This document shows positions 3,001 through 58,512 of a DNA stretch of 64,000 nucleotides, piece by piece. The notes beneath the pieces were generated by a model. That model was not told the DNA's origin and did not search any database. It worked only from the letters and a program-made list of their open reading frames with translations. The stretch is taken from positions 3,529,648-3,593,647 of the forward strand of contig SMSO01000014.1 in the NCBI GenBank assembly GCA_004764695.1. Reading direction: 5' to 3'. The stretch is from Schizochytrium sp. TIO01 (Eukaryota > Protista > Bigyra: Labyrinthulomycetes). Positions within the stretch are counted from its first letter, which is position 1, and every line of letters starts with the position of its first letter. Position numbers and translations under genes: made by a program.

Positions 3001-3611
3001 TATGGATAATTTGCTTTTGGAGGTGGCTTTCGCTCCTTGTGAGGAGGTTTTCTTTCTTCTCTGTCATTTTGCTCGCTTAGATCAGGGCAAAACTTGACAC
3101 GTTTGACTACGTGACATTGCGCCATAGCATTCATTGCACAGTGCGGCAAAAGGTTCTCTGTCACACTTTATTATAATTCTCGCAAACTCGAATTGTGTTG
3201 AAGCTGGCGTTGCTTAAGCTTTCGCTGTCCAACAACAATAGTCAGCGCATCTTCGTCCCCGGGGCTAACCGTAGCCGCTGCCAGATCCCAGAGCGGGGTC
3301 CAGTCATTTCCGTTTAATGCTTTCCACGCTGGTTTCAATGTTTTTCGCGGCGCCATGGTTGCAATGGCCACGTTTGCGCACGTATCGAAATCATTGGCCG
3401 CTCGGACGAGTTTCAAGTTGTGCGGAGCATTAGCACGAAGGTCTTCTTTTGAGTATCTTTATGCAACGCCGCCGTGTCTGTGGCCTTCCACTCCAACATT
3501 TATGACGCCAGTAATTGGCTTCTTTTATTTTATTTTATTTTATTTTATAAATAATAAATAGATTAAAAATATGTTAAAATTAAATTAAATTCAACTTTTA
3601 ACTTTCTTTTC

Positions 3612-3668
3612 CTCTTCTTCTTCTTCTTCTTCTTCTTCTTCTTCTTCTTCCTCTTCCTCTTCCTCTTC
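3612..3668. repeat. (CTT)n / (CTCTTC)n polypyrimidine microsatellite
   Basis: Direct reading. Confidence 0.9.
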
Positions 3669-4590
3669 AAAAATAAGCAAAAGAAGAACAACAAAGAAAA
3701 ACAAAAGCTTTTATTATTTATTTCCTATTAGTCAAATTCCAACCAGCCTGTGGAAAAACCTAGCACTACCGAGATCACAGAGAGCCAAGCTATCTTGAAT
3801 GTGAAACCGTACGCGCTGATATGTCAGGCCTCCGCCCTCTTCCTTTTCTGAAGCCAATCTGCCCACCATGGCAGTACCCAAGGTACAAATCGCATTGTCC
3901 AGTACACCACCCAGTTCCCAAAACTTCCACGCAATTTTTACTATTCATGTAGACTACTATGATCCACCACCGTACCTTCTTCTTTCATCTTTTATCTAGG
4001 GAGTAGTAGTACCTCGGCAGAAGTCGGTAGCAGGTGAGTACCACAGAACACGAAGTCTCTTTCGCTCTTCTCTCCACCTTTACAACTAGTTTCAGATGGC
4101 CTATAGAATTCATGAATTCACTCCAAATGAGATGAAGTAAGCTAAGCAATCAATCACACACGAAGCTCTCCGCTCCCCGCTTGCCGCCCAAGAGGTCCCC
4201 TTTCCAATGTTGCTGTCTTCTGCTGCATCTGCTTCGGATCACGATTGCCACAGTACGTACATCCATCTTGAAGCTGGCATCGTTGCGGATACACCTAGTG
4301 GGGCCAGGACCAAAGTGGTCCATGGTGGGCATTTGCAGAGGCAGGTCCTGGCGAAATAGGAATCAACATCGTTGCAAGAAGGCGAAGCAAAGGATATCGT
4401 GATCAGCCGGCAAAACCACAGAATCCAGGCTCGCTCGAGGGTCCGAGGTCCCTCGACCGATCAGGGAATTGCGTTGACCACAAGCGTCAAAACGCGGGTT
4501 CCAAGACACGCTCTCAGCGGAAAGGGACCAAGGTGTACGTGCGTATGTAGCACATGAACCTCTGCATTCATGGAGCATATACATAAATCT

Positions 4591-4756
4591 GTATGTATGT
4601 ATGTATGTATGTATGTATGTATGTATGTATGTATGTATGTATGTATGTATGTATGTATGTATGTATGTATGTATGTATGTATGTATGTATGTATGTATGT
4701 ATGTATGTATGTATGTATGTATGTATGTATGTATGTATGTATGTATGTATGTATGT
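4591..4756. repeat. Perfect (GTAT)n microsatellite, about 41 units
   Basis: Direct reading; generates the MYVC-repeat artefact ORFs in all three + frames. Confidence 0.98.
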
Positions 4757-4943: not shown

Positions 4944-5333
4944 CTGGTGGCTACAGGGTGTTTGGTTCCCTTTTCGTCCGAGTTACAGACACTGTTTTCT
5001 ACCTGATGGCGGCCTCCTACCAAAAGACCTCGAGCTTCGGAAGACCACTCACTGGTTTTACAGAAGAATGGAAAACCAATCCATGATAGTTCGACTCCGA
5101 AAGTTCAGGGCTCCAGCCCACTTGGGCCACTTATCTCTAGAGGAGAGGACCGCGCAGCACACAGAAGGGCAGAGAAACGAACATCACGCATTCATAAAGC
5201 CGCTTTTGCACGCACGATTAATTGCGCAATCCTCCTTTGCGGCCAGAGATCATAAACGCAGTGCTGCCTAGGAACGGATGAATGCGTGAGTGAAAGAATG
5301 CAACATGAGTGCACAGTGGGTCAATGAACGAAT

Positions 5334-5423
5334 GTATTATCGTATTATTGTATTATTGTATTGTTGTATTGTTGTATTGTTGTATTGTTGTATTATTATA
5401 CTATTGAACTATCGTATTATTGT
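5334..5423. repeat. Degenerate 8-bp tandem repeat (GTATTRTT / GTATTATC)
   Basis: Repeated gtattatt / gtattgtt / gtattatc units. Confidence 0.8.
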
Positions 5424-8400
5424 ATGCATGCATCTTCTGCTATAAATCGAGGCAGTTTTGGTTTATTTTATTTGGTCAGAATTGGGAGAAGAAGCCTGTG
5501 CCCAATACCTTGGCAAGGATAGAAGAACGGCTCAGAGCTTAACAGCGTCGCCGTCGTAGTCGTGGCAGCCCGTAGGAGAGTCGTGATGCTCGTATCAGAA
5601 GCGCTGTGGCTCCGTAGTGTACGAACAGAACACGAAAGAAGACATGAGTTGAGTTAGGTAGCAAACACTGAGTCCCGCGAACACACCGTCACTAAAGGAA
5701 TCTTTAGTGCGCCATAACGCGCCTGTAAGGGAAAAGACACCTAAGTAGTGCCCGGTAGGTACCTACCTACCTACCTGCCTACCTATCATTTGGCATCGTT
5801 GCGGTATGGGGGGAAGCGCAGAGGTAATAATAGGTATAAACTTCTTCTTTGTCTCCGACGGTCAGTCCTCGAAATTTTTTGATTATTATTTTTCACTCAC
5901 TTTTTCCATCGTTCTCGTCGGCAGATACGTTCAAGAGGGCAAAATTCTTTCTGGATTAAATTTTAATTTCATAAAGAGAATAATAATCGTAGTTTGAGAG
6001 TATAATTAGCAAAGGTAAAATAAACATTTTTAAAACTTCAAAAATATGTTGAAAATGCAAATACTTTGGCTTTTAGAAAAGAAAAAAAAAAATCAAATGG
6101 AAATTAATTTTCTAAAATAAATCTGTTGACATACTTATAAAATTTTAAAATTTAGCAAGAAAAAGAAAAATGTTATTTTAAAAGTTCATTCCTTGCAATT
6201 TACGACAGAGTAGCGCGAGCAGTTTGATGAGAATCAACAGGAGCATTATCATAAGATCATTGGGTCAACTTTTAGCAGTCATGCTGTCTCCATCATCCAT
6301 TGATTGCCCCATAAATACATGATGTTTTGAAAATTCATGTTCTTGTTTTCAGAGCTGGCGTTTCTATTCTGTGTAAACGATGATCAGAGCATTTGCATAC
6401 CAACACAATGCATTGTATCAAAAGCAACAAATTCTAAAATAATCAATACCAGTCTAAGCAATAGGCAATAACTAAAGAGACAGTAAGAAAACATAAGCAG
6501 TGTGGATAGAAGGATCAAACAAGAATAAATCTATTCAATCTCCAAAGGTTGCATGTATCAAACTTAAATTCTGCGACAAACCTATAACTCCTTGGCGATC
6601 GCGATATATGTCGTAGAGGTAATCGGAACCATATAGCGGAAATTTAGCAATAAAGTCTTGATTGCTTAAGCAATCAGAATACGTTATCCCCCCATAATGC
6701 ATGAAGGACAACTTTGAAGCATCTCGTCCGGGCCTCTACTTATGTTATACTCGACTAAATGCATTCATTTTACATAAAGTCGTTTTACATCTCTTGACAT
6801 ACACTATGTATTCTTGTTCATTTCAACTCAGATGTATAAAGTGTAATTGTTGTGATGCTTGCACGAATCTGACATGTGTTATATATTCTTCAGTCGTGCG
6901 ATGAGGCCTCAACTGAAATTCGCACCATGAGACACCAATCATTTCACAACATATGTAATTTGAGTATTTGATTGATACTGCTAATAAATCTTGGCTAATA
7001 AATCTTTTTGTAGGAGCCTTCGGTGTAAACTCAATTGAGTATAATGATCCTAAATACACAACTTACATATTTTTTCCTAATGACATTAGTTGAACTCGAA
7101 ACTAAGTTTACGACATAGTAGAAAGCATAATCAATTTAATATTCTGTACTTAACAACTTATGTTGATTAAGGAGTGTAAGCTTGAATTCTTTAATACTAA
7201 TTTAAGTTGTTTTATAAGCCACTTAGAATTAGCAAAAGTGCAATCAAAGGCATGTCTTAGCTGATAGAATAAAACAATTTTCCAAACAAAGAAGTTTTCT
7301 AAAACAAAAATATATCTGCCACTCTCGTTGAGAACAGATCACTCGCAATAATTTTTCTTACCCACTTCGAAAACATGTTCCTCTTCTTGTCTTCCACACG
7401 AGTTTATATTCAGCCGGGCTACCAGCTATGATGGTTGGGGCCGCGACTTTTTTGCAAGCTATGGCTAAATGTTCCCAACATATTCTTGCAGAGATCGTAG
7501 TTATTCTGTGTTATTCAAGTAATGTGGACGTTCAAGATTATTTCGTTGCCCCCTCCCTTCGAAATCACGAGGTACATTCGTAGATTCCAATGTGAAGATC
7601 GCACGAATAAGGCCAATCCAATACTTATTTGATCAATGGCTCGCAAACCTTTTAATCATAGGTTGAGCAGTGGGTCTGCCACTCGTTCATTTTCCTATGA
7701 AAAGAGAAAGGCGGGAGGTACTAGCAGACATGATAAAATATAGGTTGCTATAGCTTAACAGATTGCGTTTGTTGAATTTAACCAGTATGTTCTTGCGAAG
7801 CAGTGTACGCCATACAAACATGATCGATTCAAGGTTCATAGATTGCTATCATGATTTCCACTTCTACCATAGGATTTGATATTATGAAAGAAAGCCAAAA
7901 AGAAATCAAAGGACTTCACGAAGGTTGGCTGGCTCTTAAAGTCTTAAAAATTCTGGTCATCAAGTTTATTTAATCAAGTCTTACAAAGCTCACTCGGTGA
8001 AAACCTACGCTATTTCCCAAATAGAACGTGGAAACTGAGCAATGCAGGCTTCTTTAAACACAATACTAGTATTTGCGAAGAAATGAATTAAACAGCAAGA
8101 ATAGTATTCATCCTATTTCACAAAATGATCACAGAATCTTTTAGTAAAGATAATGGAAGTGATATAAATAATCAGCGCTATGCTGCACTAAACAGCTAGA
8201 ATACTCAAGCTTCGCTCTTTTATCTCCTTCTGAGGAAGCTTTAACTGAGAATTATAGATAGAAAGGAAGTTACGATGTTGAGCTGAGGCACGAGAGCCAA
8301 TTAAGAAATAATTTCGGAGTGCTATATGTCTTCTTTTCAAAGGTTTCTTCGAGACGGAACAAGCTTTATCATTGCACTGCTACTAGTACCTAATACATAC

Positions 8401-10690
8401 TGCTTCTCGCGCCATTCATTGACCTGGGTCACGTTTTGATATCGCTTTCTCTAAGCATAGTTAACCTTATGCCTTTGTTCGTCGATTTTAGCTGCCCCCT
8501 TTTGGCGTCCTGGGTTCAGTTTGCAAAAAAACATATATTCATAGGACCCTATGTAACGGGGAAAAGTTGGAATCAATGGAGGGGTGAGCGAGAGACAGAC
8601 TTTGAAGTCTTATCTGTGAGAAGTTCTAGGTAGTAGTAGGTATCCTCATCCTTTTGTATGCTCGATGTTTTGGACACCTTTTTCACTGCACGGAGACCAC
8701 CACGAAGGATCGAAGAACGACGTTAAACAAATTAGCGCTCTCTTTTGACCTTGCAATTCCATAGCATCGGCGTGAAGTCTTGGACAGTTTCACACGAGCA
8801 AGTATTTATTTCTATATTCTATCATTGTACATCGAACACATTTGGTTGAGCTTAGTCGTGTGGACCAATTATAAGGGCATCCATCCAATCTGGCAGTATT
8901 GGCGATATCTCTTGCTAGTTTTGATGGGGAAATAGAGTACCACAGATTCGCTTCAAATTCAACGTGCACCCGTTGCAATGGCTGCATATAACCTAGAGGT
9001 GTAATTCTTCTGGCACACGAGGATCGCTCAACCACTCGAGCTCGAACGCAAGGAAGAGCCATTACAAGACAAGTCAAAACAGCATTCTTTTTCTCATCTT
9101 CAGGAAGACCTTGAACAGAGAAAAGGGCAATGGTGTGCGGACTCAGGCCTTCTCGGACACTCCTTGAGGTGCAATATGCACTGAGAAATAGGGACAAAGC
9201 ATCTTAAGACAAAGCCGTACGTATGTTACCGTGTAAACGCAACCAGGCAATGCTCAAAGAACCGAGATAACAGACAGCTGTCGTCACGAAAGGATAGACG
9301 GGTGGACTAAAGGTGCGGCGTGCTTCGTAAAGTTCGAAAACTAGTTTCAACCACTGTCCCCGAGCTCTTGAGTAAGACGAAAGAGATGAAAATTGAAAGA
9401 CGTTTTGTTAATGAATAAAAAAACGTATTTTAAAATGGTCTTTTCTTCTTTAAAGAAATAGTAAGAATAAAATATTAAAACAAACTTTAAACTACAAGTC
9501 AAATTTCTAGCTTAGCAGAACGTTTGAATAAATGCAAGTTTAGAAGGAAAAAGAGAACGCCGAACATCGAACGTCGAACATTGAGATATGCTAGTATTAA
9601 GTAGAAACCCCTCGCAAGAGACTCGCTTGAACTAGAGTACCATGAGCAAAATATCCACCCCAGCTTCCTTTCTTTTATGTATACAATCTTTGAACCCTCG
9701 AAGAAGCGATTTTGTATGGTTTCATCTTTCTAAATAGGTCTTACAATTCGTGTTTTCTAGAGTTAGATCTCCTTCTCTGTTCTTTCGCAAAAGAACAGTA
9801 CGTACCTTTTATCGAACATCAAGTCAAAACACCCTTCAAGGACAAAAGCAATGACTCCGAGCAAGGTATGATTGGGGGGAGGGGGGGGCTAGAGGAAGCT
9901 CGGAGCTGCCATCCCAGCGTCCCATTCTCGTGTGCCTTTTTGTTATAATAGTTCTCTGCTCGATTCAATAAACCTGTACCTACCTACCCACCCTCTTTAT
10001 TGATAATAGAGTACTAGGAGAGTAAAACGAAGCACACTAAGCACTTGAGAAAACTAAATAGCTGTAAAAGTAATTGTGGGAAAGGCTGGAGGTGAAGTAA
10101 GCCTAGCTGAATCGCTGTTTTAAAGTGTAGACAAGTATTAGTGGAGATTGCAACTGTGATTCCTTGGATGACTTTCGAGGTAGAAATAGAATAGCATCCT
10201 TGTGCGGAATGTCAAGATTTAGCAGGCCTGCCTTTTGTAGCTCCGAACTCAGTTATCGATTGCTGCAAGACTAATGTGCGATCACCTGCCCTTGGAGCAC
10301 TGGCTTTCCTCAAGAAAACAGATAATAGGGTAGTAAACCTCTCTTCACATGACACTAGCTTTAGTGCTACCGGGTTCGACCCAGAGTTTTTATGTCAATC
10401 AAAGTCAACTTCATCATTTCGAAGGATCTTAGAATGAAATTTTGCGAGGAACAAAAACCGTGCTGCATTTCGCAAGGCCAGACGACAAGTGTCCAATCAC
10501 AATAATAAAAAATCCTTGGCAATGCCATGACTTATTAATTACTCACATTACATTATTCACCAATTGTAAAATTCTCAGAGTATTCTCGTTTAAGATCAAG
10601 CAGCAAAAAATATATTTGCAATACTCAAATAGTCTACATATACATGAGAATACAAAGTAAATGTTATAACAGCTATTAACATTTTCTTCC

Positions 10691-13600
10691 CTATGATACT
10701 CTGGTACTCTCAATAGACACGGGAATGCGATGATGTTGAGAAGGTGGTTGCTTCTTTCGACGCGCCGGAAAAGATTGTTCTAGTGCTTGCTCCTTTGGAA
10801 TCTGCTCGTCTATATCCTGCCGCTGCCTGCGACCAGATATGGACCTTGCTCTTGTTAGACGTTTTATCTCATCGATAGAGCGAGTCTGGTTATTCAAGTC
10901 AAGGCCGGTCGCAATCCAGTGTTTTAGAAGATCACGCATACTCCAAATTGTGCTATTAGAGCCAATTCTAACAGGGTCAGATATATTGTTGTTCCCCATC
11001 ACATCAGTCCATGACAGACTGAATCTGCGAGAATTTCGAGGCAGTTCTTCCCAAATTAAGGCTTCTGCAGCTTCTAGACGCAGTTGCCGCTGCCATTCTG
11101 GCCAGGTTTCTAGCCAAATTTCAAAATCTGCACCCGAAACATCAAGAGCGGCACGCCGTGCCTCGTCAATTTCTTCATCAGAAACGTGCATATACTGTGG
11201 GAAAAGCATATCTTCGCTGGATACGGGCAGCTCTAAATCATCCTTCAAGGATATTTCAAAGCGCAAAAATACACAAACGTCGTCTGCAGCAGAGAGACTT
11301 GAGATTTTTCGCACACAGTGCTGATGCACGATTTCGAGACGCATGACTCCAAGTCCCAAACGCCTAAGAGCATTTCTGTCACCTCGTGCTTGACCAATCA
11401 GACCTACAAGAGTAAGTTGATTGAGGGCCCATATTGGTTTATCACCGCAAGCGTCGACAGAATCAACCATATGCCCAATGATCTCGGAGCGAGCATATTC
11501 GTCATTAACTACCGAATTGAGAGCATTCAGGACTCGGCGAGCTAATCCAACCTGCAGATTCTCGTTGCGGAACTCCTTGGACAAACGAAGCTTCGAGAGA
11601 AACTGCAAAACCCCGCGTCGGTCACTAGGCTCAATGTATTGCTCAAGTGGAAGTGTATCCTCTGGTTCTTCACGCCCAGCTTTACGAAACCAGAATGCTA
11701 AAGCGTGCTCAAACGAGGAGAACTCACCACCATTCAGCATGTCTAGCTCTACCCTAGATGCTCGACTACCGGCAAGCTCCAATGTAAGTATATCACCAAC
11801 TGTGCTACGCATATCAAAATGAAATCTTAAGTTTCGTGTCTGGGAAGATCGTAGCCTTGATATCATAGCTTGGGTAATTCCCGATCCAGCAAGGTAAATA
11901 TTATGCTTACCCCCGGAGATTGTAGGACCCCAATCAAATATACAAGTGGGCAGCTCAGTAATATTTAAGCAACCCTCGATGCTGAGATCTTCGCCGACGG
12001 TGAATCGGCGGGGTAGCTTGCAGAGGGCCACACAATCTCGCAGATTTAGTGATTGACCAACTTCAATCGACCGGAGTCTGGCAAGAGCAGTGCAACCACC
12101 CAGATCGAGATTACCCCCTATTTGAAGGTGTCGACCAAGGGAACGAAGATTTCTGCACTTCGGTAATAAGAGGCTACCAGGCACGTGTAGGTCGTCGCAC
12201 AGAGTCTCCAGGCACTCCGCTTCAGACGAGTAGACATTTAAATGAGGTTTAAAACCCTTTGGGAACTTTGTGAGAGAGTTGGCAATAATCCACACGTCAC
12301 CAAAGACCTCAAGGTGCTCTGGTAGGTAGGTCAACTCATCATACAAGGTAAGATACAGATCATCGTTCACAATCCAGCCGTTTGGAAGCTCAAGATTAGG
12401 ACAATTCCATGGGTGGATACGGCCCTGTACCCGCTCCTGAATGTCACTTTGGAGTCTGCGCAGGCCTGTACACCCGAAAAGGTCTAAGTCGCCATCCACA
12501 CGTAAGTCTGCAGGGAGCTCTTCAAGAGCTGTACAGCATCGCAGTCGCAGGTTCCCCGTGCGCAATCGTGAGGGTAGCGAACGAAGACTTGTGCATCCTG
12601 ATAAGTTACATGAACGCTCCACTCGCAAACCTGAGGGAATGCGCTCTAGAGAGGTGCAACGACTCGCATCCAGCATACCCACGCGACGCAGACGAGACGG
12701 TAAGCGCCGAAGCTCTGGGCAATTCGAGAAATTTAAAACATCTTGAACAACTTCAAGAATGCGCGGGGCTGTCTCCAAGGATGCCATATTCGCAGCAAAT
12801 AGGCTCCCTTTAATCCGCGAGGTGGTAAAGTCTAGAGCTTTAATTGAGCTGCACATGCTGACTCCAAGGCCATTGATAATCGGAAGACCAGCGGGAATAG
12901 ATGTTAGACTCGTGCAACCTTGCATCTCAATGTAAGAACCTACATCAATATATGTGCTGATTCGTTTCAGCGATGTGCAATCACGCAAAGTTAACGCACC
13001 ACCAACCATTAAATCATCACCAAGCTCCTCGAGTGATGTGCAATGGTCTAAATCAAGATTTCCCTTAACTTCAAAGCGAGCAGACGTGCGCAGCTTTCGA
13101 ATCTTAGTACACCTTGAGAGATTCATATCGCCTTGTACGATAAGGCGTATCAGAGGCTGTCGTAAATACAAATTGGCACAGCGACTGGCACACAGGTGTC
13201 CGTCAACTTCAAGACTTTCAGGTAAACTTTCCAGTCCGGTTTCAATAAGTCCAAGCGAACCTGTTACGTGCATACTACCAGGTAATTGTTTAAGCTTATC
13301 CAGTCCACTCACATTGAGCGTGCCGTGCAATTCACCAAAATCTGGGAGACTTGATAAAAGCTTAAATGATGTGAAGTCAAGCACTGGTTTTTCAGGGCAT
13401 TTCTTAAGCAGCACGCACAGGGCTTGGTCATTGGCATCTTCTTCTGGAAGGTCAAGGTTCAAGTCCCAGAGTTGCATTAGTGTAAGAGATCGAAGGGCCT
13501 GCACCGTAGTGAAACCACCGTGTCTAAGCGCTTCGCAGACACGCTCGGCCATTTCTATAATCTTTTCTGATGAACTTGAGGACTGAAAATGTTGCATTAG

Positions 13601-13891
13601 AGCCCATCGTATCTTTGCCTCTTCCAGATGCCTTCGCCCGGTACTGTCTGCCTGATCTTCGAAGAGAAAGTCATACACACGTTTGCAAGCTTTCACTCGT
13701 TGTTTACGCTCATTTTGAGGTATGTCCCGTTCCTCGGACCAAACCTCACAGCAAGTCATAAGTTCTTCAGCGTACATTTTGGCAGACTTACGCCGTAATT
13801 CTCTCCCAGATGTTTTTGTTGAAGGTTTTCGTAAGTCTTTCAGTTTGTCTGCAATCACGCTTGGCCGTGACATTTGGCTGGACCTTGGCAT
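10691..13891 (-). CDS. LRR-containing NEL-type (IpaH/SspH-like) E3 ubiquitin ligase, about 1066 aa
   Basis: Uninterrupted ORF. First ATG is at 13891 (the track start 13909 is TTG; in-frame stop at 13976-13978). Many ~21-22 aa LRRs of the LxVxGxLxLxxCTxLxxLP type. The C-terminal region DACGDKPIWALNQL...RLEIV...DDVCVFLRFEISLKDDLEL...DMLF...FEIWLETWPEWQRQLR parallels the IpaH NEL consensus (SCEDRVALTWNNL...RLEIL...DEIEVYLAFQTMLAEKLQL...EMRF...FTDWFSLWGPWHAVLKR). Catalytic Cys codon at 11447-11449. Confidence 0.85.
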   Translation of the reverse strand: MPRSSQMSRPSVIADKLKDLRKPSTKTSGRELRRKSAKMYAEELMTCCEVWSEERDIPQNERKQRVKACKRVYDFLFEDQADSTGRRHLEEAKIRWALMQHFQSSSSSEKIIEMAERVCEALRHGGFTTVQALRSLTLMQLWDLNLDLPEEDANDQALCVLLKKCPEKPVLDFTSFKLLSSLPDFGELHGTLNVSGLDKLKQLPGSMHVTGSLGLIETGLESLPESLEVDGHLCASRCANLYLRQPLIRLIVQGDMNLSRCTKIRKLRTSARFEVKGNLDLDHCTSLEELGDDLMVGGALTLRDCTSLKRISTYIDVGSYIEMQGCTSLTSIPAGLPIINGLGVSMCSSIKALDFTTSRIKGSLFAANMASLETAPRILEVVQDVLNFSNCPELRRLPSRLRRVGMLDASRCTSLERIPSGLRVERSCNLSGCTSLRSLPSRLRTGNLRLRCCTALEELPADLRVDGDLDLFGCTGLRRLQSDIQERVQGRIHPWNCPNLELPNGWIVNDDLYLTLYDELTYLPEHLEVFGDVWIIANSLTKFPKGFKPHLNVYSSEAECLETLCDDLHVPGSLLLPKCRNLRSLGRHLQIGGNLDLGGCTALARLRSIEVGQSLNLRDCVALCKLPRRFTVGEDLSIEGCLNITELPTCIFDWGPTISGGKHNIYLAGSGITQAMISRLRSSQTRNLRFHFDMRSTVGDILTLELAGSRASRVELDMLNGGEFSSFEHALAFWFRKAGREEPEDTLPLEQYIEPSDRRGVLQFLSKLRLSKEFRNENLQVGLARRVLNALNSVVNDEYARSEIIGHMVDSVDACGDKPIWALNQLTLVGLIGQARGDRNALRRLGLGVMRLEIVHQHCVRKISSLSAADDVCVFLRFEISLKDDLELPVSSEDMLFPQYMHVSDEEIDEARRAALDVSGADFEIWLETWPEWQRQLRLEAAEALIWEELPRNSRRFSLSWTDVMGNNNISDPVRIGSNSTIWSMRDLLKHWIATGLDLNNQTRSIDEIKRLTRARSISGRRQRQDIDEQIPKEQALEQSFPARRKKQPPSQHHRIPVSIESTRVS

Positions 13892-16365
13892 CGTTACAAA
13901 TATCTCCAATTCTTCGCGACGACCGTCACTCGGTGTGCCCTCTTCCTGAAGTTGATGTTGCGAACTCCTTTGATACTACTATTCTGAGGAAGTCTATGTC
14001 CTTCTGTGTTAAGAAGGCTAGAGTTTGACTTAAATTAGTTTGCACGAATGTCTACAAATAACCGAACTCGAGACGACTAAAGAAGAGGGTTGAAGGGCAC
14101 CTTAAGACGGTATACTGCAACTGTCAAGACCAGTAAACACTAATGTAATACCTGGTAAAACCAGCTTTCTCAACGTGAAGAGTCGTGCGTATATTTCTCT
14201 CTCCCGTGCAATGCAGCAACTCTGATGCTTTCTGGGGCGATTCGTAGCACCCTAGCAACGGGTTTCAGGTGTGTCGTTCTCCCTTTCTTTTGAGGTTGCC
14301 TCAAGATGAACCAGCCTTTCGTTGGTCTCTTCGCTCCTGGGCTTCCCTCGCCCTCGACTCTGCTGTCGCTGCTCCTCTTCCCCACTGCAGCTCGTACGTT
14401 GCTTTGCACTCAGCCTTGCGGCTCTCTGCAATTGCACGTTTGCACAAGTGCAAGAGGCCAAAGTTGTGAAGGGGCGATTTCGTAGCTGTCCAAGTTGAGC
14501 CTTTAGGGATGTAATTTGTGTAGGTAATTCATTGATGTAGTGATCTTGGAAGTAAAACAGCGCTCCGACAACAACAAAGAAAACTCGCTCTTTCCATGAA
14601 AACGACGACCTTCAGATTAGTGCGTACCTGCCTGTGCCCGACTACCCTTGAAACCTGCGTCCAATAGCAGAGCACACTGAGCTGCAGCTAATACGTGCAG
14701 GTAATTCTTTCGAGGCTGGGCTTGTATAACTCGAAAATGGCACTCCGAGGATTCAAGCGGGGCCCAGAGGGTGTGTACTACGATCTGTACAAGAAACGTG
14801 AAGGATTCTTTCCAGTTTAGGGGAAGTGAGGTCCTGGTTTCAAGGTGGTGCGATTCCCTTTCAGCCTAAGCACATGCCGACGAATGAATCGAAGCAGATC
14901 GAACTCGGTGTTTCCAAGCTTCGCCTAGCCACACTGCGTGTGCTTGGAGCATCAGAAGTACTAGTAGCCGGACTATTTGGTACAGGAGCGCAGCTCGATT
15001 CGGCGGGGCAAGCTGTGCAGTACGAAATCGGTCTAAATCTTGAAGCACATTATTCTGCATCGGTGAGGATCGATTGCGTTGGCACGCGCTGCGGCCTTGC
15101 AAGATTGACAACTCCAAGTGCATGGATGGCAATAACTGCCTAAAAGCTGAGTTTCGCCAAACTCCTCTGTACAACTTTGCAATTGGCGCTTCCCAGAAAA
15201 GTCATGAAAATAATAATTCTTCGTGGAGCTCAGGAGCGTCTAGGAGTGGAATGATTATAATGTAGGCCAGAAGGAGTTATTGCCAAAGTTTCTGTACTAT
15301 CTCCTATCGCCTCGATGTTTGGGCTCTGATCCCATATTATACTTCCCAGCGCTCTCACTTCGTCATCTTCCTGACAACTGCGCCGTCACCGTAGATCGGC
15401 GACGCGAAGGTCAAGCACAGCTGACCTCCCTCGGCGCGGACTTTATCTAATTGAAAATTGAATTGCGCTTGGACACAGCATTCTGAAACAGGCTTGAGTT
15501 CAGACGTTCATATGTTCTGCACTTGCACAGGACAATCGCGAACTGATCTCGAAGCCCGTGCCTTCAGCGACGCCTATCCGAGAATGAAATGCGAGTGTCT
15601 TCTACTTTTGATCTCCTTCCTATAACACCAGACACCCTCAAAGCCCGTGAACGCTCGAGCAGGCCTCAAAAGATGTTGTCGAAGGCTGGCCGATTGACCG
15701 CCTGCTTCAAACGCGCGGGCTGCGAAGAAATGCGCATGAGGGTAAGGGGTTTGTAAGTGATGTTGGATCCGAGGTGAGATACAACTTGAGAGGTCAGCAT
15801 GTCAGATCTAGATTCTCTTAAATCAGAACAGCCAAACAACAAGGTTGGACTTGAGAGACATCGTTGCAATCGCGCTGCAGCTTTGCGACACCGAACAGAC
15901 TTATCCCTGGATTCCATACGAGGAGGCATTTGATATGATTGTTTTGATCAAAGGATATATGGGATCCATTCATGTCAAGGGCTCAGCTAGAGGGTGGGGG
16001 GGGGGGGGGGCATTTCCCCCCGTAGAATAACTCTTGCATTGAGGAGCGGGGCAAATGAAGCGTATAAATTCCTCAGCACGGCTTCGAGGAAAAGCCTGCC
16101 GAGCTATACTCCACTACGATGCTAATTGGATAGAACTAATTTTTGGATATGAAAATCACTCAACTTATATTTAGTTTTATTGTCAAGTTTACATAACTTT
16201 GTACTTCCTTTGCTTCAATCTAAGAAAAGTAAGAATAATAGGTTACAACAACAAATATTGCACGAAGGCAGCCGCGTATGCATTCTGCAACACTAGACGT
16301 TGAAAAGTTATGAACTGCTACCCTGCAGGCCGTAACAAACGAGGCCACGCTTCTTTCCCCAATAT

Positions 16366-31410: not shown

Positions 31411-33197
31411 ACCAACAAAAAGAGAAAGGGGAAATGGCCTATTCACAGAGAGACGAGATAAGAAGGTTTCTCTGCTTTGCTCTTTTGCAAAGGGAGGAAG
31501 TCGACCTTCGCAGATGCCGCTGCATATGCCACAAAGCCTCCCGTTCTCGACGAAATTCTCGCATTCGTCGAGCAGCTTCCTTCAGATTCTTCAGCTGCAT
31601 TCGAAAGAAACTATTCTTGCTGAAGCGTGTGTTTTCTTACTCGCGAAAGAAAAGGAATCCCAGCGATGCTAATACATGGAAAGAAAGCAATGGCTTGGCA
31701 AAGGCCATGCACGGTCTTGGCCGCGTTGCAGTACGTGGCGCGAACAGCGTTTGACTGTCTAAACTTCGAGGCGGCTCTGTATTGTGAAAGGCGAACGCTT
31801 CATGGCAGGAGCGAAGAAGACGAGAAAGACGGTCCTTGGGGGAAGATAACAACGCCACTTACAAAAGTGGGTCCAAGTCCCTGAAATTGAATGTCCCCGA
31901 ACTTAGCAGTCTGAGCCAAAACGAACCCGGAATAACTGGGACACCGTTTTGCCCTTTCCCTCGATGATGAGGATTGAGATTGAGATTGAGGACGACGCTG
32001 GCATCAACGCTGTACCATTGCTTAATCAGACCCGAAGCTGAAATTCTTCATCAACGAACCAAGGTAAAACCAGGCCTGGAAACGAGGTATACCTAGCTGG
32101 GCAGTGAAATTTTCTGCATCGTGTACATTGACGGAATATATAGCAGCGAGATAGGGGATTACGAGAAGCACCGAATAAAAAGATGAACGGATGTTGCTGG
32201 GTACTACAAGACCATACGAAACGTTCATGAACCTTAATATGGGACGATTTTGGATGTCACAGATCAAGATAAGTGAGACTTTAGCTCGGTTCATTTGCAT
32301 TTCGTGGGACTCGATCCGAAATTGCTGGCTCTGAGGTGGAATAGAATACACATGGGATTTAGAGCTCCTCTTGTTAGCAAACACAGCTTTGCACCAGTCA
32401 TAGTTGAATCCAGCCTCGGTTTGTGCTCCGTTGAACGAGTGGGTGAAAATCGAAGTACAAACCTTCGGTTCAACAAACTGTCATATGCATAAGATACCTT
32501 TCGTATACTTTAATATACGGCTAGTCTCAGTGAAAAAAAAAAAGAAAACACGCTCATCTGGTCAGTTCTTTTGTAGAAGCAAAGAAAGAATATCAGGAGT
32601 ATTAAAGTTAACATGAAGAAACTGAGCATGAGTATGCGTCACTTTCCTACGAAAGACTTTGAAGAAACAGAAATGCTTACTGGTGTTCGAAATTTTGTAA
32701 ATCTTCAAGCGTTAAGGCAAATAAGCAATCACAGGAGTTCGCGATAGTTATCCATGCTCAGATCTTGCTGTAAAACAGCGCTCTAGTTAGTTCGGAGCCA
32801 CCAAGAGCTTTTCTGTTGGTTGCATGTAAGCTCATGTTAGAGAAAATATCAACTGTACTCTTAGGGAATTACATATGGAGGCACTAGCTAATAGTAGATG
32901 CATAGGTACTAGTATTGGAGCTAAAATAAGCCCGGATAAGCCGGTTCTATTGAATATAAAATGGGTAAAAGAATGAAGATGTCTCAACGGCCGTATTGGT
33001 TAAGTTTCACCTTTTGACGAAAAGCATATCAGAAGAACCGCTGTGCAGATTGTCGAAGATATCTGCGAGACCTTCGGCAAAGCTTATACATACTGTTGCG
33101 CTAAAAGAGACAATTGTGGTTAGGCCCAGGACGGGCTTTGCTTGCGAATAGGCCTGGCAAGTTCTTTGGAGAAGTCAAGTTTCTGCGTTTAGCCGCG

Positions 33198-35486
33198 ATG
33201 GAGCTGTGCAGAAGCGACCTAGCCACCGTGGGACCGGTGTCTGGGCTGAACACGCTAAAAATTTTACCATTTGGCAGCAAGAGTAGGCGACAGCGAATCA
33301 TTGTAGGTGATGGTGCTGGGTTTATCACATGCTTGCAGTCAAAACGAGGAGAGACTTCTGCAGTTTTCAAAGCTCGTGCTGGTGAAAATAGCAACCCTGT
33401 TGCATCACTCACCTTAGATGGCGACAATATCTTTGCAGCAGAAGGTAGAGCAGTTCGAGGTTTTAACAAGAAAGGCAAAGAGACCTATGTGTACAACACA
33501 AGCCTTTCGGAATCTATTCGCCATTTAGTCAACTCAGGATCAACGTTCTGGGTTGCAGGCCAGCTTACTTATACTTCTTTCGAAGGTAGCTCTGAACGAG
33601 AATACTTGAAGTTTGAGGATTCAATCACAAGCCTTGCTGTAATGAATGCATCCACCTCGGAGAAGAGTATTGCTCTTCTTGGAGGCAGTGGTCATAAGAT
33701 TCGCTCTGTGTTTCATGGCGCTATCGTATCTACTCTTGCCACGTCTGGTGTCCCAACAAGCTTACAAGCATATGGGGAAAACTGCGAGCAAGGCCTTTAT
33801 GTGTACGGAACAGCGTCAGGATGCCTCGGGATGCTTCAAGTCTGCGAGTCTGGTCAATTGAAACGTCTATGGGAACTTGCTGGAGAAGGGAGCATCAATT
33901 GCATAAGTACATATGACTTTAATAAAGACGATATTCCGAACATTCTAGTTGGCCGAGACGATGGAAGCGTTCAGGTATTTGCTGTACATGGCACTGATGG
34001 AGCATCCAAGACACAGGAGAGTAAACAAAATGCATTATTCATACCTGAATATGCTTCACTTAAATATGAATGCCAAGTTGATGAGAGTGTTCGAGCAATT
34101 CAGGCAGGTGTGGTCAGCACCCCTGGATATGATGAAATTGTGCTCTGTACATATTCTGGAAATGTCATTAGCTTTAGCACTGAGGCCCTCGACACAGCAG
34201 AGACTGGAGATAAACAAGGGCGAACAAAGGCTGACGTCGATGCCGAGGGTCGCACCACACAACTTCGTGAGGAGCTCAAGTCAGTTCAAAAGCAAATTGA
34301 TGCAACACGCGCCAAATTACTCAAGCTGAATGGGGATACACAATCGAGCCTTGCAATCAACTTTGATCAGTTACATATTAACCACCGTCTCGAATTGCAA
34401 CCTCGAAGGAGCACGTACTGTCTCTCTTTAGAAATGGTAGTTCCAATGTCACTTGTTATTCTTCAGTCAGATCTTCCTATCAAACTCATCGATACTGATG
34501 AAGCGAACATTGATGGTAGCCGTTCATCCCAAAGCATAGTTATCACCAAAAAGGAGTTGCCAACGGGCGGGGTTCATGCAGTATATCGTCCAGAGGAAGC
34601 ATGCAAACGAATCGAAATTCGAATTGGCACCTTAGAAGGTCAATATGGTGAGATCCGGGTCACCGTAGTGGCTGCCACGAAGCCCCAACTTGGCCGTCAA
34701 CTCACGGTAGAGATCAAGCCTCTGTCTTTGCACCAACGATGTGACGTAATTGAAGACTTGGCCAAAATTCCTCTGAGCCACGTACGATTCACAGGAACAT
34801 TCTCGCTTCACCAAGTTCATGAATGGATTCAAGCGTGCCTCCCGTACGTGCCAGCAAGTACACCCACTCCTGAAACTATGAAAACCTTCTCAAAGTCACG
34901 CGGTATGGACGGCCGGGAAGAACCAGGTCAAGAGCAGCCAATGGCTGTACTATACTATCGCAACACTCTGGTAAATAGCGTACTTGTCGTTCGTTATTGT
35001 TCAGGGTTTATTGAAGTGGAGTCTGATTCGATTTCTGCTATCGCGATTGCTCGCGAGGTCATAACAGCTGTGGCGAACAAGAGAAAAGCAAACATCGTCA
35101 TGCGCTTCGAAATTAACCCTGCAACTGTACCATACTTTCTTCAGCGATTGGATGCTCCATTGCAAAAGTACACGAAACTCCATGAGCGCACACTACTTGC
35201 TGATGCCTTGCGTGAAATCTGTAATGACGCAGATGGATCTGCCAATGGAGCGTTTCTTGTACCTGAACATCGCAGTATTCTAGCCAAACCTGAAACCTCT
35301 TCAGTACAGCAAAATCAGTTTACATCCACACTCCAGGCCCTTCAAGGTGTTGTCTCAGATTTGTATGTAGATATAAAAAAGTTTGCAGGAAGCGACATCC
35401 GCAACCCAAACTTTCATGCAGGTCTCTCCCGGATTCTCGATAACTACTCTCTTGATGCACTGCTCAATTTTTTCTCTCAGAATTAA
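33198..35486 (+). CDS. BBS7: Bardet-Biedl syndrome 7 protein (BBSome subunit), 762 aa
   Basis: First ATG at 33198. MELCRSDLATVG...TLKILP...QRIIVGDGAGFITC...KRGETSAVFK matches the BBS7 N-terminus. Also ILVGRDDGSVQV, GYDEIVLCTYSG, IGTLEGQYG, IKPLSLHQR, GTFSLHQVHEWI and SDSISAIAI. Confidence 0.95.
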   Translation: MELCRSDLATVGPVSGLNTLKILPFGSKSRRQRIIVGDGAGFITCLQSKRGETSAVFKARAGENSNPVASLTLDGDNIFAAEGRAVRGFNKKGKETYVYNTSLSESIRHLVNSGSTFWVAGQLTYTSFEGSSEREYLKFEDSITSLAVMNASTSEKSIALLGGSGHKIRSVFHGAIVSTLATSGVPTSLQAYGENCEQGLYVYGTASGCLGMLQVCESGQLKRLWELAGEGSINCISTYDFNKDDIPNILVGRDDGSVQVFAVHGTDGASKTQESKQNALFIPEYASLKYECQVDESVRAIQAGVVSTPGYDEIVLCTYSGNVISFSTEALDTAETGDKQGRTKADVDAEGRTTQLREELKSVQKQIDATRAKLLKLNGDTQSSLAINFDQLHINHRLELQPRRSTYCLSLEMVVPMSLVILQSDLPIKLIDTDEANIDGSRSSQSIVITKKELPTGGVHAVYRPEEACKRIEIRIGTLEGQYGEIRVTVVAATKPQLGRQLTVEIKPLSLHQRCDVIEDLAKIPLSHVRFTGTFSLHQVHEWIQACLPYVPASTPTPETMKTFSKSRGMDGREEPGQEQPMAVLYYRNTLVNSVLVVRYCSGFIEVESDSISAIAIAREVITAVANKRKANIVMRFEINPATVPYFLQRLDAPLQKYTKLHERTLLADALREICNDADGSANGAFLVPEHRSILAKPETSSVQQNQFTSTLQALQGVVSDLYVDIKKFAGSDIRNPNFHAGLSRILDNYSLDALLNFFSQN

Positions 35487-43512: not shown

Positions 43513-45801
43513 TTAGTTATCATATTCGATTGTACCATTCATAGCAGATATTAATGCAGATTGAAGGGCCGCAGCCCTAGCAAGATCAAAGATTGTCCCA
43601 TCAGACGATGAATTTTCCAATGAATTAAGCTCAGCAAAGGCACGCTGGAGTTGATCTACACGCATACAATGCTCATTTAGCAAGTAAAGATAGTTGGCAC
43701 TATTCTCTACTGTCTGCGGGTCTAAAAGCTGAGCACGCAATTCATCAGCGGAATGTTGAAGTGCCCGGCGAAAATTAGTCTGCTTACGGATAGTTTCGGA
43801 CCTCCGCAGTAGTGCCCGACGTGTCGCTGCTAATAGATCAACAGTTGGGATTTCTTGCAAATGAATAGCTTCTCGTCTGATATGTGATACGAGAGTTTCC
43901 AATGGTTCTCTTTCCATACTACCCACAACCCAACGAGTACTACCACTACCGGTATCAATCATCAGCTCGTGCCTTTGAGAGTATACGTGCGTTCCGTCAT
44001 GGGACATACTCGGTATCGATTCCAATTTTATTTTCATAGGTTCTTCAAGAATTGTACAGTGTGCCATAGATTGCTCCATGTCGCTTTCAAAAGCCAAGAG
44101 GCTATGACCAACGCACACAAGCCATACAGGCTCGACACCGCTAGCAGACGATGAGGAGTCTGCTGTAGGAGACGGGACAGTAGTAGACTCACGTGCATTT
44201 GAAGGCGAGTTCGAAGAAGAGGATGAAGACGAGGATGCGGTGTTATGTATCGGTAAGATCGAGAGTTCGAACCATCCCCGGAATGCTGTGTCTGGAATCT
44301 CGAGTGATCTCGAAAGTGGCAGACTAGTTCTATTTTTCATTGATAAACTGGGTCGGGGTTGATTCCTTACGTCATTCGATGGATTCTTGTTTTGTGCTTG
44401 TGCTAGGGCCTCTTGAAGCCGTGCATTTTCGACTGCAATTCGCTCGAACTCGCTAAGAACGCTATCCATTTGGTCTTCGAAAAAATTCCTTTCGTCAATG
44501 CGCAAAATTTGTTGTTCTTGGAGCAGCGCAAACAATTGCTGGCGATTAAGTGATTCTGTTTCTGGAAATGTTGACCCGAGAGAAGCCATGGATATTGACG
44601 ACCCTTGGCGGACCGCGGCTCGTCCATCAGAAAACGTGGGTACAGGAGTACTTTGACTTTGTGAAAGACGGATTGGAGTCTCGCTGGCAATTGTGGATGA
44701 CTGAGCAGCACCAGCAGAACCACTAACACCGACGCCAGATGGTGGATTTATCAGCCCTACGCCAACGGAGGAAAGCCGACCAGGAGTTTGCAGCGGGGAG
44801 TAACCTGCTAAAGGTGGAACTGCCACGAGGCCGCTACCTTCGCGACTGTGAAAGCCTGAAGACGGCGTCCCATTCGCCGTTGCAGCTGTAAATGTCGCCA
44901 ATGATCGTGGTGAAACGGAGTTTCTATCGGTATAAGCTGATGTGGAGCTTGCTCTAGACTCCGCGTCCCGTGCCTTCTTGCGTTCCTTTTTACGCTGCCG
45001 TTTAAGCTCCTTCTTTTCTTTTTTCTCACGCTTACGCTCCTTCTTAAGACGGTGTGCTCTCTCCTGCTCGGTTTCGTGACTCGCGAGTTCAGGGGACTTA
45101 AGGTTGCTCACGTCACTTTTAGTGTGTATAATCTTTACGGTATCACTGTCATCTTCATTCTCATCATCATCGTCATCTTCGTCGTCATTATCACCACCAC
45201 TGCCAAAGTCATGTCGAGACGCCCTTCCATGTGGGGGCTCTGGGTCGCTAACAGTATGTTTTCTCCTCAGCGAGGTTGGCGTTCCTAGTCGTCTCTGTGT
45301 TGTGATTTGAGGTATCTGCTGATCTTGCACTTGCGGGTCTCCCTGCAGAGTGTCCATTCTAGAAACCTGACTCTGCTGCAAAAAATTATTCTGATATTGG
45401 TGCTGAACCTGCTGATTTTGAGGATTTTGCAATCTATATTGCAGAGAGCTCTGCCCAGGATGCTTTGGAGGCGTTAGCCTCGATGTCGACGATCTCGAGT
45501 TATCATCTTGCAGCTCATTTCGGATGCCAGGACTCAATAAGTTTCTGCTCGATACCCCGATGCTAGATCCGCGAGTGTCAATCGCTCCTGGAGATCTCGA
45601 AGCAAGGGAATTTGACCCTGTTATTGAGCTGCGCGAGTTGACTGCAGAATTACTCCTAAAGGAGTCGTTGTTGCCTTGAAGATTCGAGGAGGGTCTTAAC
45701 GCAGCTGAGGAGGAGGATCCAGAGTCAACGCTTCGCACAGAGTCCAGGCTTGAGCGGTCCTGCGAACCCTGACGCCCAGAAGGGCCCGTGGGACTGGACA
45801 T
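43513..45801 (-). CDS. Hypothetical protein: low-complexity N-half, Lys/Arg-rich patch, coiled coil, PH-like domain, helical tail; about 762 aa
   Basis: Long ORF, first ATG at 45801. Coiled coil LSEFERIAVENARLQEALAQ. PH-like strand/helix order FRGWFEL...VWLVCVGHSLLAFES...HELMIDT...RWVVGSMEREPLETLVSHIRR. Confidence 0.75.
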   Translation of the reverse strand: MSSPTGPSGRQGSQDRSSLDSVRSVDSGSSSSAALRPSSNLQGNNDSFRSNSAVNSRSSITGSNSLASRSPGAIDTRGSSIGVSSRNLLSPGIRNELQDDNSRSSTSRLTPPKHPGQSSLQYRLQNPQNQQVQHQYQNNFLQQSQVSRMDTLQGDPQVQDQQIPQITTQRRLGTPTSLRRKHTVSDPEPPHGRASRHDFGSGGDNDDEDDDDDENEDDSDTVKIIHTKSDVSNLKSPELASHETEQERAHRLKKERKREKKEKKELKRQRKKERKKARDAESRASSTSAYTDRNSVSPRSLATFTAATANGTPSSGFHSREGSGLVAVPPLAGYSPLQTPGRLSSVGVGLINPPSGVGVSGSAGAAQSSTIASETPIRLSQSQSTPVPTFSDGRAAVRQGSSISMASLGSTFPETESLNRQQLFALLQEQQILRIDERNFFEDQMDSVLSEFERIAVENARLQEALAQAQNKNPSNDVRNQPRPSLSMKNRTSLPLSRSLEIPDTAFRGWFELSILPIHNTASSSSSSSSNSPSNARESTTVPSPTADSSSSASGVEPVWLVCVGHSLLAFESDMEQSMAHCTILEEPMKIKLESIPSMSHDGTHVYSQRHELMIDTGSGSTRWVVGSMEREPLETLVSHIRREAIHLQEIPTVDLLAATRRALLRRSETIRKQTNFRRALQHSADELRAQLLDPQTVENSANYLYLLNEHCMRVDQLQRAFAELNSLENSSSDGTIFDLARAAALQSALISAMNGTIEYDN

Positions 45802-57978: not shown

Positions 57979-58465
57979 ATGGCAGCGCAAAAGCCTGCCC
58001 CCCATCGTGCCATGGGCCTCCGTCGAAGAAAATGCGACTTTGCGTGGAGTTCCGTGCTGCTGGTGAACTGGTTTGCCACCAGAGGAAGCGGCATTGTGCA
58101 TGGGTTTCCAATCAATGCTTTGAGGATTCCGAACGGGCGGGCTTTTCCGGCGCTGGGACATCGCAGGGTCACTGGAGGTGGACCGCTGTCCGAGTTTGGA
58201 GAAGATTTTTTGAAGTGCGAGGGCACATGGTACGTGTGAATATTCTAGTTCGAGTCTTGTAAAGAATCGATGAGGAATTAAGTTGCATCTAAATACGTCC
58301 GCGATGTTATATCGATGACTAACAAAAGTAGCGATTCCATGAAGGTAAATTCAAACTGCATTGAATATTTATGGTGTCTTATTCCTGCTTCTCGATGTTT
58401 TATCATGGTTGTGTGGTCTATGATTTTTGCAAATCATCTGGACTCTTGGGATTATTACCCCCCAC

Positions 58466-58512
<47 letters not shown>

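Follow-up and report, generated by a model that had tools for sequence, protein, structure and literature searches.

We found that a protist genome encodes a predicted ubiquitin ligase of the NEL type, a class of enzymes that is a textbook bacterial invention for hijacking host ubiquitination. The stretch of DNA that we analysed (hereafter, the window) comprises 64,000 nucleotides of Schizochytrium sp. TIO01 (contig SMSO01000014.1, C13 in our numbering, positions 3529648-3593647), and the gene in question encodes a long array of leucine-rich repeats (LRRs) followed by a NEL domain. With a probability of roughly 0.72, it is a resident, vertically inherited thraustochytrid gene for a cytosolic LRR-NEL ubiquitin ligase, which goes back to an ancient bacterial effector that was domesticated and expanded. 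The enzyme itself is known; what is unreported is its setting in a eukaryotic family that, on this reading, was domesticated, expanded, and reshuffled with other domains.

The LRR-NEL gene is one unbroken open reading frame (ORF) at positions 10691-13909 of the window on the minus strand, with 1072 codons counted from a TTG. The earliest ATG codons are at 13891 and 13873, so that the protein has 1060-1066 amino acid residues. Two proteins from independent Logan assemblies (P0001 and P0026) are 99.9% and 99.7% identical to the window protein over all 1060 residues. In the AlphaFold model of the whole protein, the mean confidence (pLDDT) was 82.5. The features of the gene, in window positions, are as follows.

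10691-13891, minus strand: LRR-NEL coding sequence, single exon; stop codon at 10691-10693, first ATG at 13889-13891; the ATG of the public gene call at 13871-13873 gives 1060 residues.
13403-13807, minus strand: predicted N-terminal helical cap, model residues 23-157 (AlphaFold helices, pLDDT 84-93).
11894-13384, minus strand: predicted LRR solenoid, about 23 units of about 21 residues of the type LxVxGxLxLxxCTSLxxLP (AlphaFold, motif count, and Foldseek).
11714-11893, minus strand: linker between LRR and NEL with the conserved WG...H.IYLAGSGI motif (GSGITQ at 11870-11887); partly disordered, low-confidence loop.
11063-11713, minus strand: predicted all-helical NEL catalytic domain (Pfam match at 11063-11623; AlphaFold helices 721-937).
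11441-11449, minus strand: putative catalytic Cys-Gly-Asp (C-x-D); the Cys is ORF residue 821, or residue 809 of the 1060-residue protein, and the motif aligns with CED of SspH1 and SspH2.
11264-11287, minus strand: acidic motif ADDVCVFL, equivalent to bacterial VDEIEVYL/VDDVEVYL (structure-sequence alignment).
11093-11116, minus strand: WLETWPEW motif, with Trp and Glu invariant throughout the family (paralogue alignment).
10841-11062, minus strand: C-terminal beta/alpha subdomain past the end of the Pfam model, with IWSMRDLLKHWIATGLDLNN at 10889-10948 (pLDDT 77-89, model residues about 960-1010).
10694-10840, minus strand: tail, disordered, basic, and poorly conserved (pLDDT 30-41); the counterparts do not align here.

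The initial annotation of the window had described an intronless gene with a long LRR array and a region collinear with NEL, and had proposed comparisons with the Pfam NEL model and with the structures of IpaH and SspH2. The ORF, the Pfam match, and the modelled solenoid all agree with that description. The Pfam NEL model (PF14496, InterPro IPR029487) matched ORF residues 763-949 with 87.5 bits (E 1.1e-24), far over the cut-off of 24, and covered positions 25-222 of the 223 in the profile; in the genome search, the window NEL scored 91.9 bits. A sequence search of solved structures with the C-terminal part of the protein retrieved only SspH1, SlrP, SspH2, and IpaH1.4, 2.5, 3, and 9.8 (E 1e-10 to 6e-7). 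In these alignments, ACGDKP of the window protein fell on the catalytic TCEDRV of SspH1, and ADDVCVFL on VDDVEVYL; the position given earlier for the CGD was exact, and the acidic motif, which had been placed at about 11265-11285 and likened to VDEIEVYL of IpaH, lies where it was expected. When the NEL region was modelled alone (pLDDT 79.8), Foldseek matches at E<0.01 were NEL structures only. VIA-align superposed this model on SspH2 (3g06), the top-ranked structure, with Z 20.2 and a root-mean-square deviation of 3.0 Å over 212 residues; seven other NEL entries gave Z 9-15, and the best unrelated row gave Z 5.5. The models therefore indicate that the window protein carries a true all-helical NEL fold. 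The subdomain that follows the NEL domain is the best conserved part of the protein across genera, with 64-68% identity to the counterparts.

Ahead of the NEL domain, the AlphaFold model shows a continuous solenoid of regular beta strands (residues 164-660, pLDDT about 90), and the LRR region contains 14 exact C-x2-L-x2-L units. The full-length model matched LRR proteins, full-length SspH2 and IpaH3, and the LRR of plant RPP1 in Foldseek; the top-ranked full-length matches were SspH2, SspH1, IpaH3, and SlrP. By both AlphaFold and Foldseek, the protein has the architecture of LRR-NEL effectors, with the LRR domain N-terminal and the NEL domain C-terminal. A W..E..R motif precedes the LRRs in the N-terminal cap (CCEVWSEE, 13730-13753) and is also present in the consensus of the protist and bacterial relatives. 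As read from the sequence, the N-terminus has no hydrophobic signal peptide, and a cytosolic or nuclear role is therefore likely.

The chromosomal setting of the gene is eukaryotic, as had been claimed at the outset together with the presence of microsatellites and BBS7 nearby. The window lies in a 7.46-Mb contig of an assembly of 64 Mb and 37 contigs, and ORFs cover 0.30 of its DNA. Other ORFs in the window encode BBS7, a RING-finger protein, UDP-galactopyranose mutase, a CoA-transferase, a DUF707 protein, and a desaturase/cytochrome b5/molybdopterin fusion. Most of the annotated neighbours are single long ORFs; BBS7, with all four of its domains, occupies one ORF of 790 codons (33114-35486, plus strand), which shows that genes without introns are the norm in this genome and that the flagella of the organism depend on the BBSome. 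The lack of introns in the LRR-NEL gene is thus no sign of a foreign origin. The GC content at third codon positions is 0.42 in the LRR-NEL gene versus 0.41 in BBS7, and its codon usage correlates with that of the pooled neighbours at 0.70, the neighbours' own range being 0.43-0.77. The DNA flanking the gene on both sides is noncoding, AT-richer, and devoid of bacterial features, and a perfect (TGTA)41 microsatellite is found at 4590-4756.

The window gene belongs to a family. When all six reading frames of the genome were searched with PF14496, there were 19 matches, all over the cut-off, which correspond to 18 loci on nine contigs; the open frames that hold them have 517 to more than 3300 codons. 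The same search detected no NEL in 14 control genomes. In the 12 paralogues aligned, the NEL domains are 42-55% identical to that of the window protein, with the catalytic Cys, the Asp, and 31 other columns invariant. The C-x-D is kept at all 18 loci, and the acidic motif and W..W.EW at essentially all of them. Retention of these motifs at such overall identity is, as judged from sequence, the pattern expected of a working active site. The modules ahead of the NEL domain are cysteine-type LRRs, armadillo (ARM) repeats, SPRY together with ribonuclease-inhibitor (RI)-type LRRs, or regions without a Pfam match, and the public homologues have the same partner domains. Three NEL genes stand in tandem within 17 kb (C24:1949952-1966773; L034, L044). 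Transcripts from the MMETSP collection also match the family: P0029 is 99.5% identical over 1671 residues to the paralogue on contig C34, and P0028 is 97-99% identical to that on contig C35.

To place the family among known NEL proteins, we built a profile from the paralogues and compared it with 1.84 billion representative proteins (E<0.001). The search returned 1951 NEL proteins, and the scores dropped after about 87-90 clusters of the protist type. A careful IQ-TREE analysis of 73 rows was performed under LG+C20+F+G4, unrooted and with no outgroup; supports are given as ultrafast bootstrap/SH-like approximate likelihood ratio test (SH-aLRT). The NEL proteins of this genome, Hondaea fermentalgiana, MMETSP, and Mucochytrium quahogii, together with those labelled Durusdinium trenchii, formed one clade with 100/96 support. 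The window gene is inside this clade and has its characteristic features (DxC.DKPIWAL and the C-terminal W(S).xDLLxHW subdomain). The phylogeny and orthologue search that the initial annotation had suggested thus yielded a labyrinthulomycete clade with Hondaea counterparts. The nearest named homologues of the window protein are from Hondaea fermentalgiana (Thraustochytrida), and the 'NEL domain-containing protein' of Mucochytrium quahogii (UniProt A0A7S2RJX0) is a more distant member.

Three one-to-one pairs between this genome and Hondaea had 100% support, and the window gene paired with the Hondaea protein P0004 (SH-aLRT 82 in the quick tree). It follows from this one-to-one pairing that the duplications behind the paralogues happened before the two genera separated. 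The window protein is collinear with P0004, the identities being 31% in the N-terminal cap, 49% in the LRRs (500 positions), 56% in the NEL domain, and 64% in the C-terminal subdomain; across the counterparts, 497-500 residues of the LRRs aligned with 43-49% identity. This pattern points to long purifying selection and a fixed binding partner rather than to a fast-diversifying sensor, and the end-to-end alignment of the LRRs with the Hondaea counterpart indicates a fixed endogenous target. The earlier suggestion that the protein might serve as an LRR immune-like sensor therefore finds no support for the window copy.

The bacterial sequences in the tree were of two kinds. The classical NELs (Pseudomonadota loci, Paraburkholderia, and one metagenome-assembled genome (MAG) of Chlamydiales) lie behind a branch with 99/97 support; among the Pseudomonadota, 6 of 401 sampled genomes had a NEL. 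Between the classical NELs and the protist clade lies a paraphyletic bacterial group of metagenomic proteins of 550-850 residues (hereafter, the mid group). The mid-group consensus has the LxVxGxLxLxxCTxLTxLP repeat, the WG...GSGI linker, and the C-terminal extension, as in the protist proteins. When aligned to the 275 positions of the protist profile, the protist and mid-group proteins extend to 268-275, and the classical NELs to about 210-240. We examined 45 mid-group loci, and ORFs cover 0.85-0.98 of their contigs, versus 0.30 for the window.

In the case of L047 (Ga0207686_10000058, a 101-kb contig), the LRR-NEL gene is located among recD, rpoD, an aminotransferase gene, mreC, and mutY. 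The RpoD of this contig is 99% identical to that of Rhabdochlamydiaceae MAGs and 90% identical to that of a Rhabdochlamydiaceae symbiont of Dictyostelium giganteum. The window protein and the Rhabdochlamydiaceae LRR-NEL protein have the WG...H.IYLAGSGI linker motif in common and align over 608 residues, from the LRRs to the C-terminus, with 29% identity (E 8e-62), which means that the whole gene, and not the NEL domain alone, is homologous. A second contig, L053 (Ga0209309_10000007, 468 kb), has der, gltB and gltD (gamma-type models), hemE, and galE as neighbours; these model names suggest that it is gammaproteobacterial. The only match of a bacterial pattern scan with the paralogue alignment was a distant Pseudomonas locus (26% identity), so that there is no close bacterial donor among the species representatives reachable by such a scan. 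Since the great bulk of NEL diversity is found in bacteria, and since every named member of the protist clade is a labyrinthulomycete except for the Durusdinium trenchii records, which are probably contaminants, one ancient transfer from an intracellular bacterium to an ancestor of the thraustochytrids is the simplest explanation. The repeat style had earlier been said to recall LRR-NEL proteins of the chlamydial type; this was borne out, since the nearest bacterial relatives share the repeat, the linker, and the C-terminal extension, and one of them is on a Rhabdochlamydiaceae contig. Horizontal capture, which had also been proposed, is kept in a refined form: the event is placed far back, because Hondaea has counterparts and the paralogues predate the split of the genera.

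The history that we propose is as follows. An intracellular bacterium, either chlamydia-like or gammaproteobacterial, would have been the source from which an ancestor of the thraustochytrids acquired an LRR-NEL effector gene in its entirety. The gene may have been retained because its product was already compatible with eukaryotic E2 enzymes and ubiquitin, and duplication and exchange of recognition modules would then have followed. In IpaH and SspH enzymes, the LRR binds the substrate and restrains the NEL domain until then, and the NEL Cys accepts ubiquitin from E2~Ub (PMC9320238). By analogy, binding of a cellular substrate to the LRR of the window protein would release its NEL domain from autoinhibition, and Cys821 would take ubiquitin as a thioester from an E2 of the UbcH5 type and hand it on to a lysine of the substrate. 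An E2 of the typical UBE2D/UbcH5-like kind is encoded in the genome (L092:1489-1929); a complex prediction of the NEL domain with this E2 had a score of 0.00, which is no answer for or against binding. A protein-atlas search gave no usable match. A broader view, for which we see slightly better than even odds, is that a chlamydia-type effector became a native fourth class of eukaryotic Cys-dependent ubiquitin ligase, with each genome holding about 18 genes in which NEL is mounted on an LRR, armadillo, or SPRY module, and with some copies, such as those in tandem, possibly pathogen-sensing or effector-triggered.

Several observations weigh against the reading of the gene as a domesticated bacterial ligase. 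As the tree is unrooted, the direction of transfer was argued from the breadth of distribution. Only one mid-group contig, that of Rhabdochlamydiaceae, was placed confidently, and the second (L053) was placed by model names alone. Four sequences (P0067, P0085, P0137, and P0089) branch close to the base of the protist clade, and Pfam scans of the sequences there did not reveal their origin. The arrangement of the domains is uncertain in the AlphaFold model (predicted template-modelling score 0.53). The window protein has Lys after the C-x-D where classical NELs have Arg, and its putative ligase activity is deduced from the conservation of motif and fold.

The missing outgroup leaves room for transfer in the opposite direction, in which labyrinthulomycetes, or some other eukaryote, gave rise to the LRR-NEL subtype that has the C-terminal extension, and this was later adopted by intracellular bacteria as a host-mimicking effector. 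Intracellular bacteria do acquire eukaryotic ubiquitin-system domains, such as those of F-box and U-box effectors, and some features that are absent from classical NELs are common to the mid group and the protist clade. However, only bacterial sequences occur among the classical NELs at the far end of the tree, and the protist clade is surrounded by a paraphyletic mid group of two or more bacterial lineages. Apart from the Durusdinium trenchii records, which are probably contaminants, every named member from a eukaryote is a labyrinthulomycete, and the control genomes had no NEL; we thus regard this direction as unlikely. The Lys after the C-x-D, which is found across the whole protist clade, and Pfam scores of 74-109 bits for the loci in this genome versus 128-259 bits for Pseudomonadota NELs would suit a pseudo-enzyme, that is, an LRR adaptor or sensor that keeps its NEL domain as a scaffold without ligase chemistry. 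This is quite unlikely in view of the retention of the C-x-D Cys and Asp, the acidic motif, and W..W.EW among such divergent paralogues.

Thraustochytrids might also export these ligases as weapons into prey, hosts, or competitors, as bacteria do. The group feeds via an ectoplasmic net, Mucochytrium quahogii, a clam parasite, has the NEL family, and the family is large and modular like effector repertoires, with three tandem copies on contig C24. The N-terminus without a hydrophobic signal peptide and an LRR that aligns end to end between two free-living genera nevertheless make export quite improbable. Bacterial contamination, an assembly chimera, or a very recent capture of a single gene would be consistent with the absence of introns and with a domain otherwise studied only in bacteria. 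We reject all three as barely credible, because there are 18 loci on nine chromosome-scale contigs, codon usage is host-like, eukaryotic DNA flanks the gene to either side, independent assemblies contain nearly identical proteins, and Hondaea has counterparts; in addition, the closest bacterial protein is only about 29% identical, and the eukaryotic neighbours are intronless too.

Some further observations concern the family and the records that carry it. Two of the tandem genes on C24 are close paralogues with N-terminal parts of about 600 residues without a Pfam match, and this cluster may evolve faster than the window gene. The locus at C31:2872556-2873105 (L046) looks like a pseudogene, the sole one in the family; its NEL domain is broken by a TAA and a shift of frame, although the C-x-D is still present. 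P0028 (MMETSP0958, 873 residues) matches C35:1853821-1856658 (L040) in two pieces that are in different frames and overlap by about 47 nucleotides, and the frameshift is either an assembly error or a strain difference. We take MMETSP0958 to be the transcriptome of Aurantiochytrium limacinum, and its source is closely related to the organism analysed here. The header of P0027 (MMETSP0958/EukProt) gives taxon id 87120, which is Rhizopogon burlinghamii in the NCBI taxonomy; as Aurantiochytrium limacinum is 87102, we read this as a transposition of digits in the source file.

Thraustochytrid-type NEL proteins also occur in records labelled Durusdinium trenchii: P0007, P0008, P0018, P0022, P0075, and P0090 (CAK9111844.1, CAK9009910.1, CAK8987604.1, CAK9011385.1, CAK9112310.1, and CAK9086939.1, respectively). 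They are spread over several thraustochytrid paralogue subclades and are on contigs of 5-28 kb; labyrinthulomycete DNA in the Durusdinium trenchii assembly seems more likely than several separate transfers. P0100 (KAK1548475.1), which is labelled Acer saccharum, falls within the bacterial mid group and probably comes from a bacterial contig in the plant assembly. On a JGI contig of 21,463 bp, four bacterial LRR-NEL genes stand in tandem (P0164, P0097, P0168, and P0170), and in L047 the LRR-NEL gene (9656-11683) is directly downstream of rpoD. Elsewhere in the window, there are further short tandem repeats (24-76, 3604-3668, and 5333-5425), an ORF of 777 residues (43513-45846, minus strand) with no Pfam match at E<0.01, and a single ORF (58427-61246, plus strand) with temptin, lipid desaturase, cytochrome b5, and molybdopterin oxidoreductase domains.

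In a full-text literature search for NEL or IpaH with thraustochytrids, protists, and chlamydiae, we found no description of a eukaryotic NEL family. A review from 2022 treats the family as bacterial (PMC9320238), and one paper mentions a NEL-like region in charophyte genes resembling those for nucleotide-binding LRR proteins, which is a superfamily resemblance only (PMC7145615). In public databases, the automatic names of the family proteins are 'Disease resistance protein TAO1', 'Importin subunit alpha', 'E3 ubiquitin-protein ligase SspH1', and 'NEL domain-containing protein'; our analysis corrects the misleading 'Disease resistance protein TAO1' and 'Importin alpha'. Under the reading preferred here, the NEL enzyme belongs to a eukaryotic lineage, which has preserved its predicted active site in 18 copies since a time before the genera separated and has joined the enzyme to recognition domains of its own; a virulence effector would thereby clearly have turned into part of the host machinery. 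The finding points to chlamydia-like endosymbionts as gene donors for stramenopile protists, and it provides a free-living and genetically tractable species for work on the regulation and substrate choice of NEL free of a pathogen. If NEL is indeed a native fourth class of ligase in these protists, the statement that NEL ligases have no eukaryotic counterpart would be overturned, and a tractable eukaryote would be at hand for finding natural, non-pathogenic NEL substrates.

Among known systems, the eukaryotic HECT, RBR, and RCR ligases would be expected to share their chemistry with the window NEL, namely a thioester between Cys and ubiquitin received from E2. In bacterial NELs, the catalytic Cys takes ubiquitin from E2 as such a thioester. 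The folds of these eukaryotic ligases are unrelated to NEL, and no HECT or RBR structure was among the fold matches at E<0.01. The family members of Hondaea and Mucochytrium, on the other hand, are true relatives that exist only under automatic names in databases, most of which derive from the LRR or ARM part, and our literature search found no paper on them; 'Disease resistance protein TAO1', 'Importin subunit alpha', and 'LRR containing protein' of Hondaea fermentalgiana are counterparts or paralogues of the window family.

The environmental bacterial LRR-NEL proteins of L047 and L053 are the nearest bacterial neighbours in the tree and share the repeat type, the WG...GSGI linker, and the C-terminal extension with the window protein. 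They differ in being shorter (650-700 residues), in lying in dense bacterial contexts (rpoD, mreC, and mutY; gltBD and hemE), and in having SCGDR(V/I) and VDEIEVYLA variants, as in classical NELs; presumably, they are secreted effectors.

Salmonella SspH2, SspH1, and SlrP and Shigella IpaH resemble the window protein in the order of N-terminal cap, LRR, linker, and all-helical NEL domain, the last as predicted for the window protein. The C-x-D, the acidic VD(E/D)(I/V)xV(Y/F)L motif, and the W..W motif are common to SspH/IpaH and the window protein, although the NEL domains are only about 21-22% identical. The SspH/IpaH proteins are much shorter (540-640 residues) and have Arg after the C-x-D; the window protein has about 23 cysteine-type repeats of 21 residues, Lys after the C-x-D, and, unlike SspH/IpaH, a conserved C-terminal beta/alpha subdomain, and its family also carries ARM and SPRY modules. 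Whereas SspH/IpaH proteins are secreted by the type III system, the window gene is encoded by a eukaryote outside any type III secretion context and does not qualify as a bacterial effector delivered by that system. As it resides in a eukaryotic chromosome, we regard it as a homologue of the IpaH/SspH effectors rather than as a member of the effector class.

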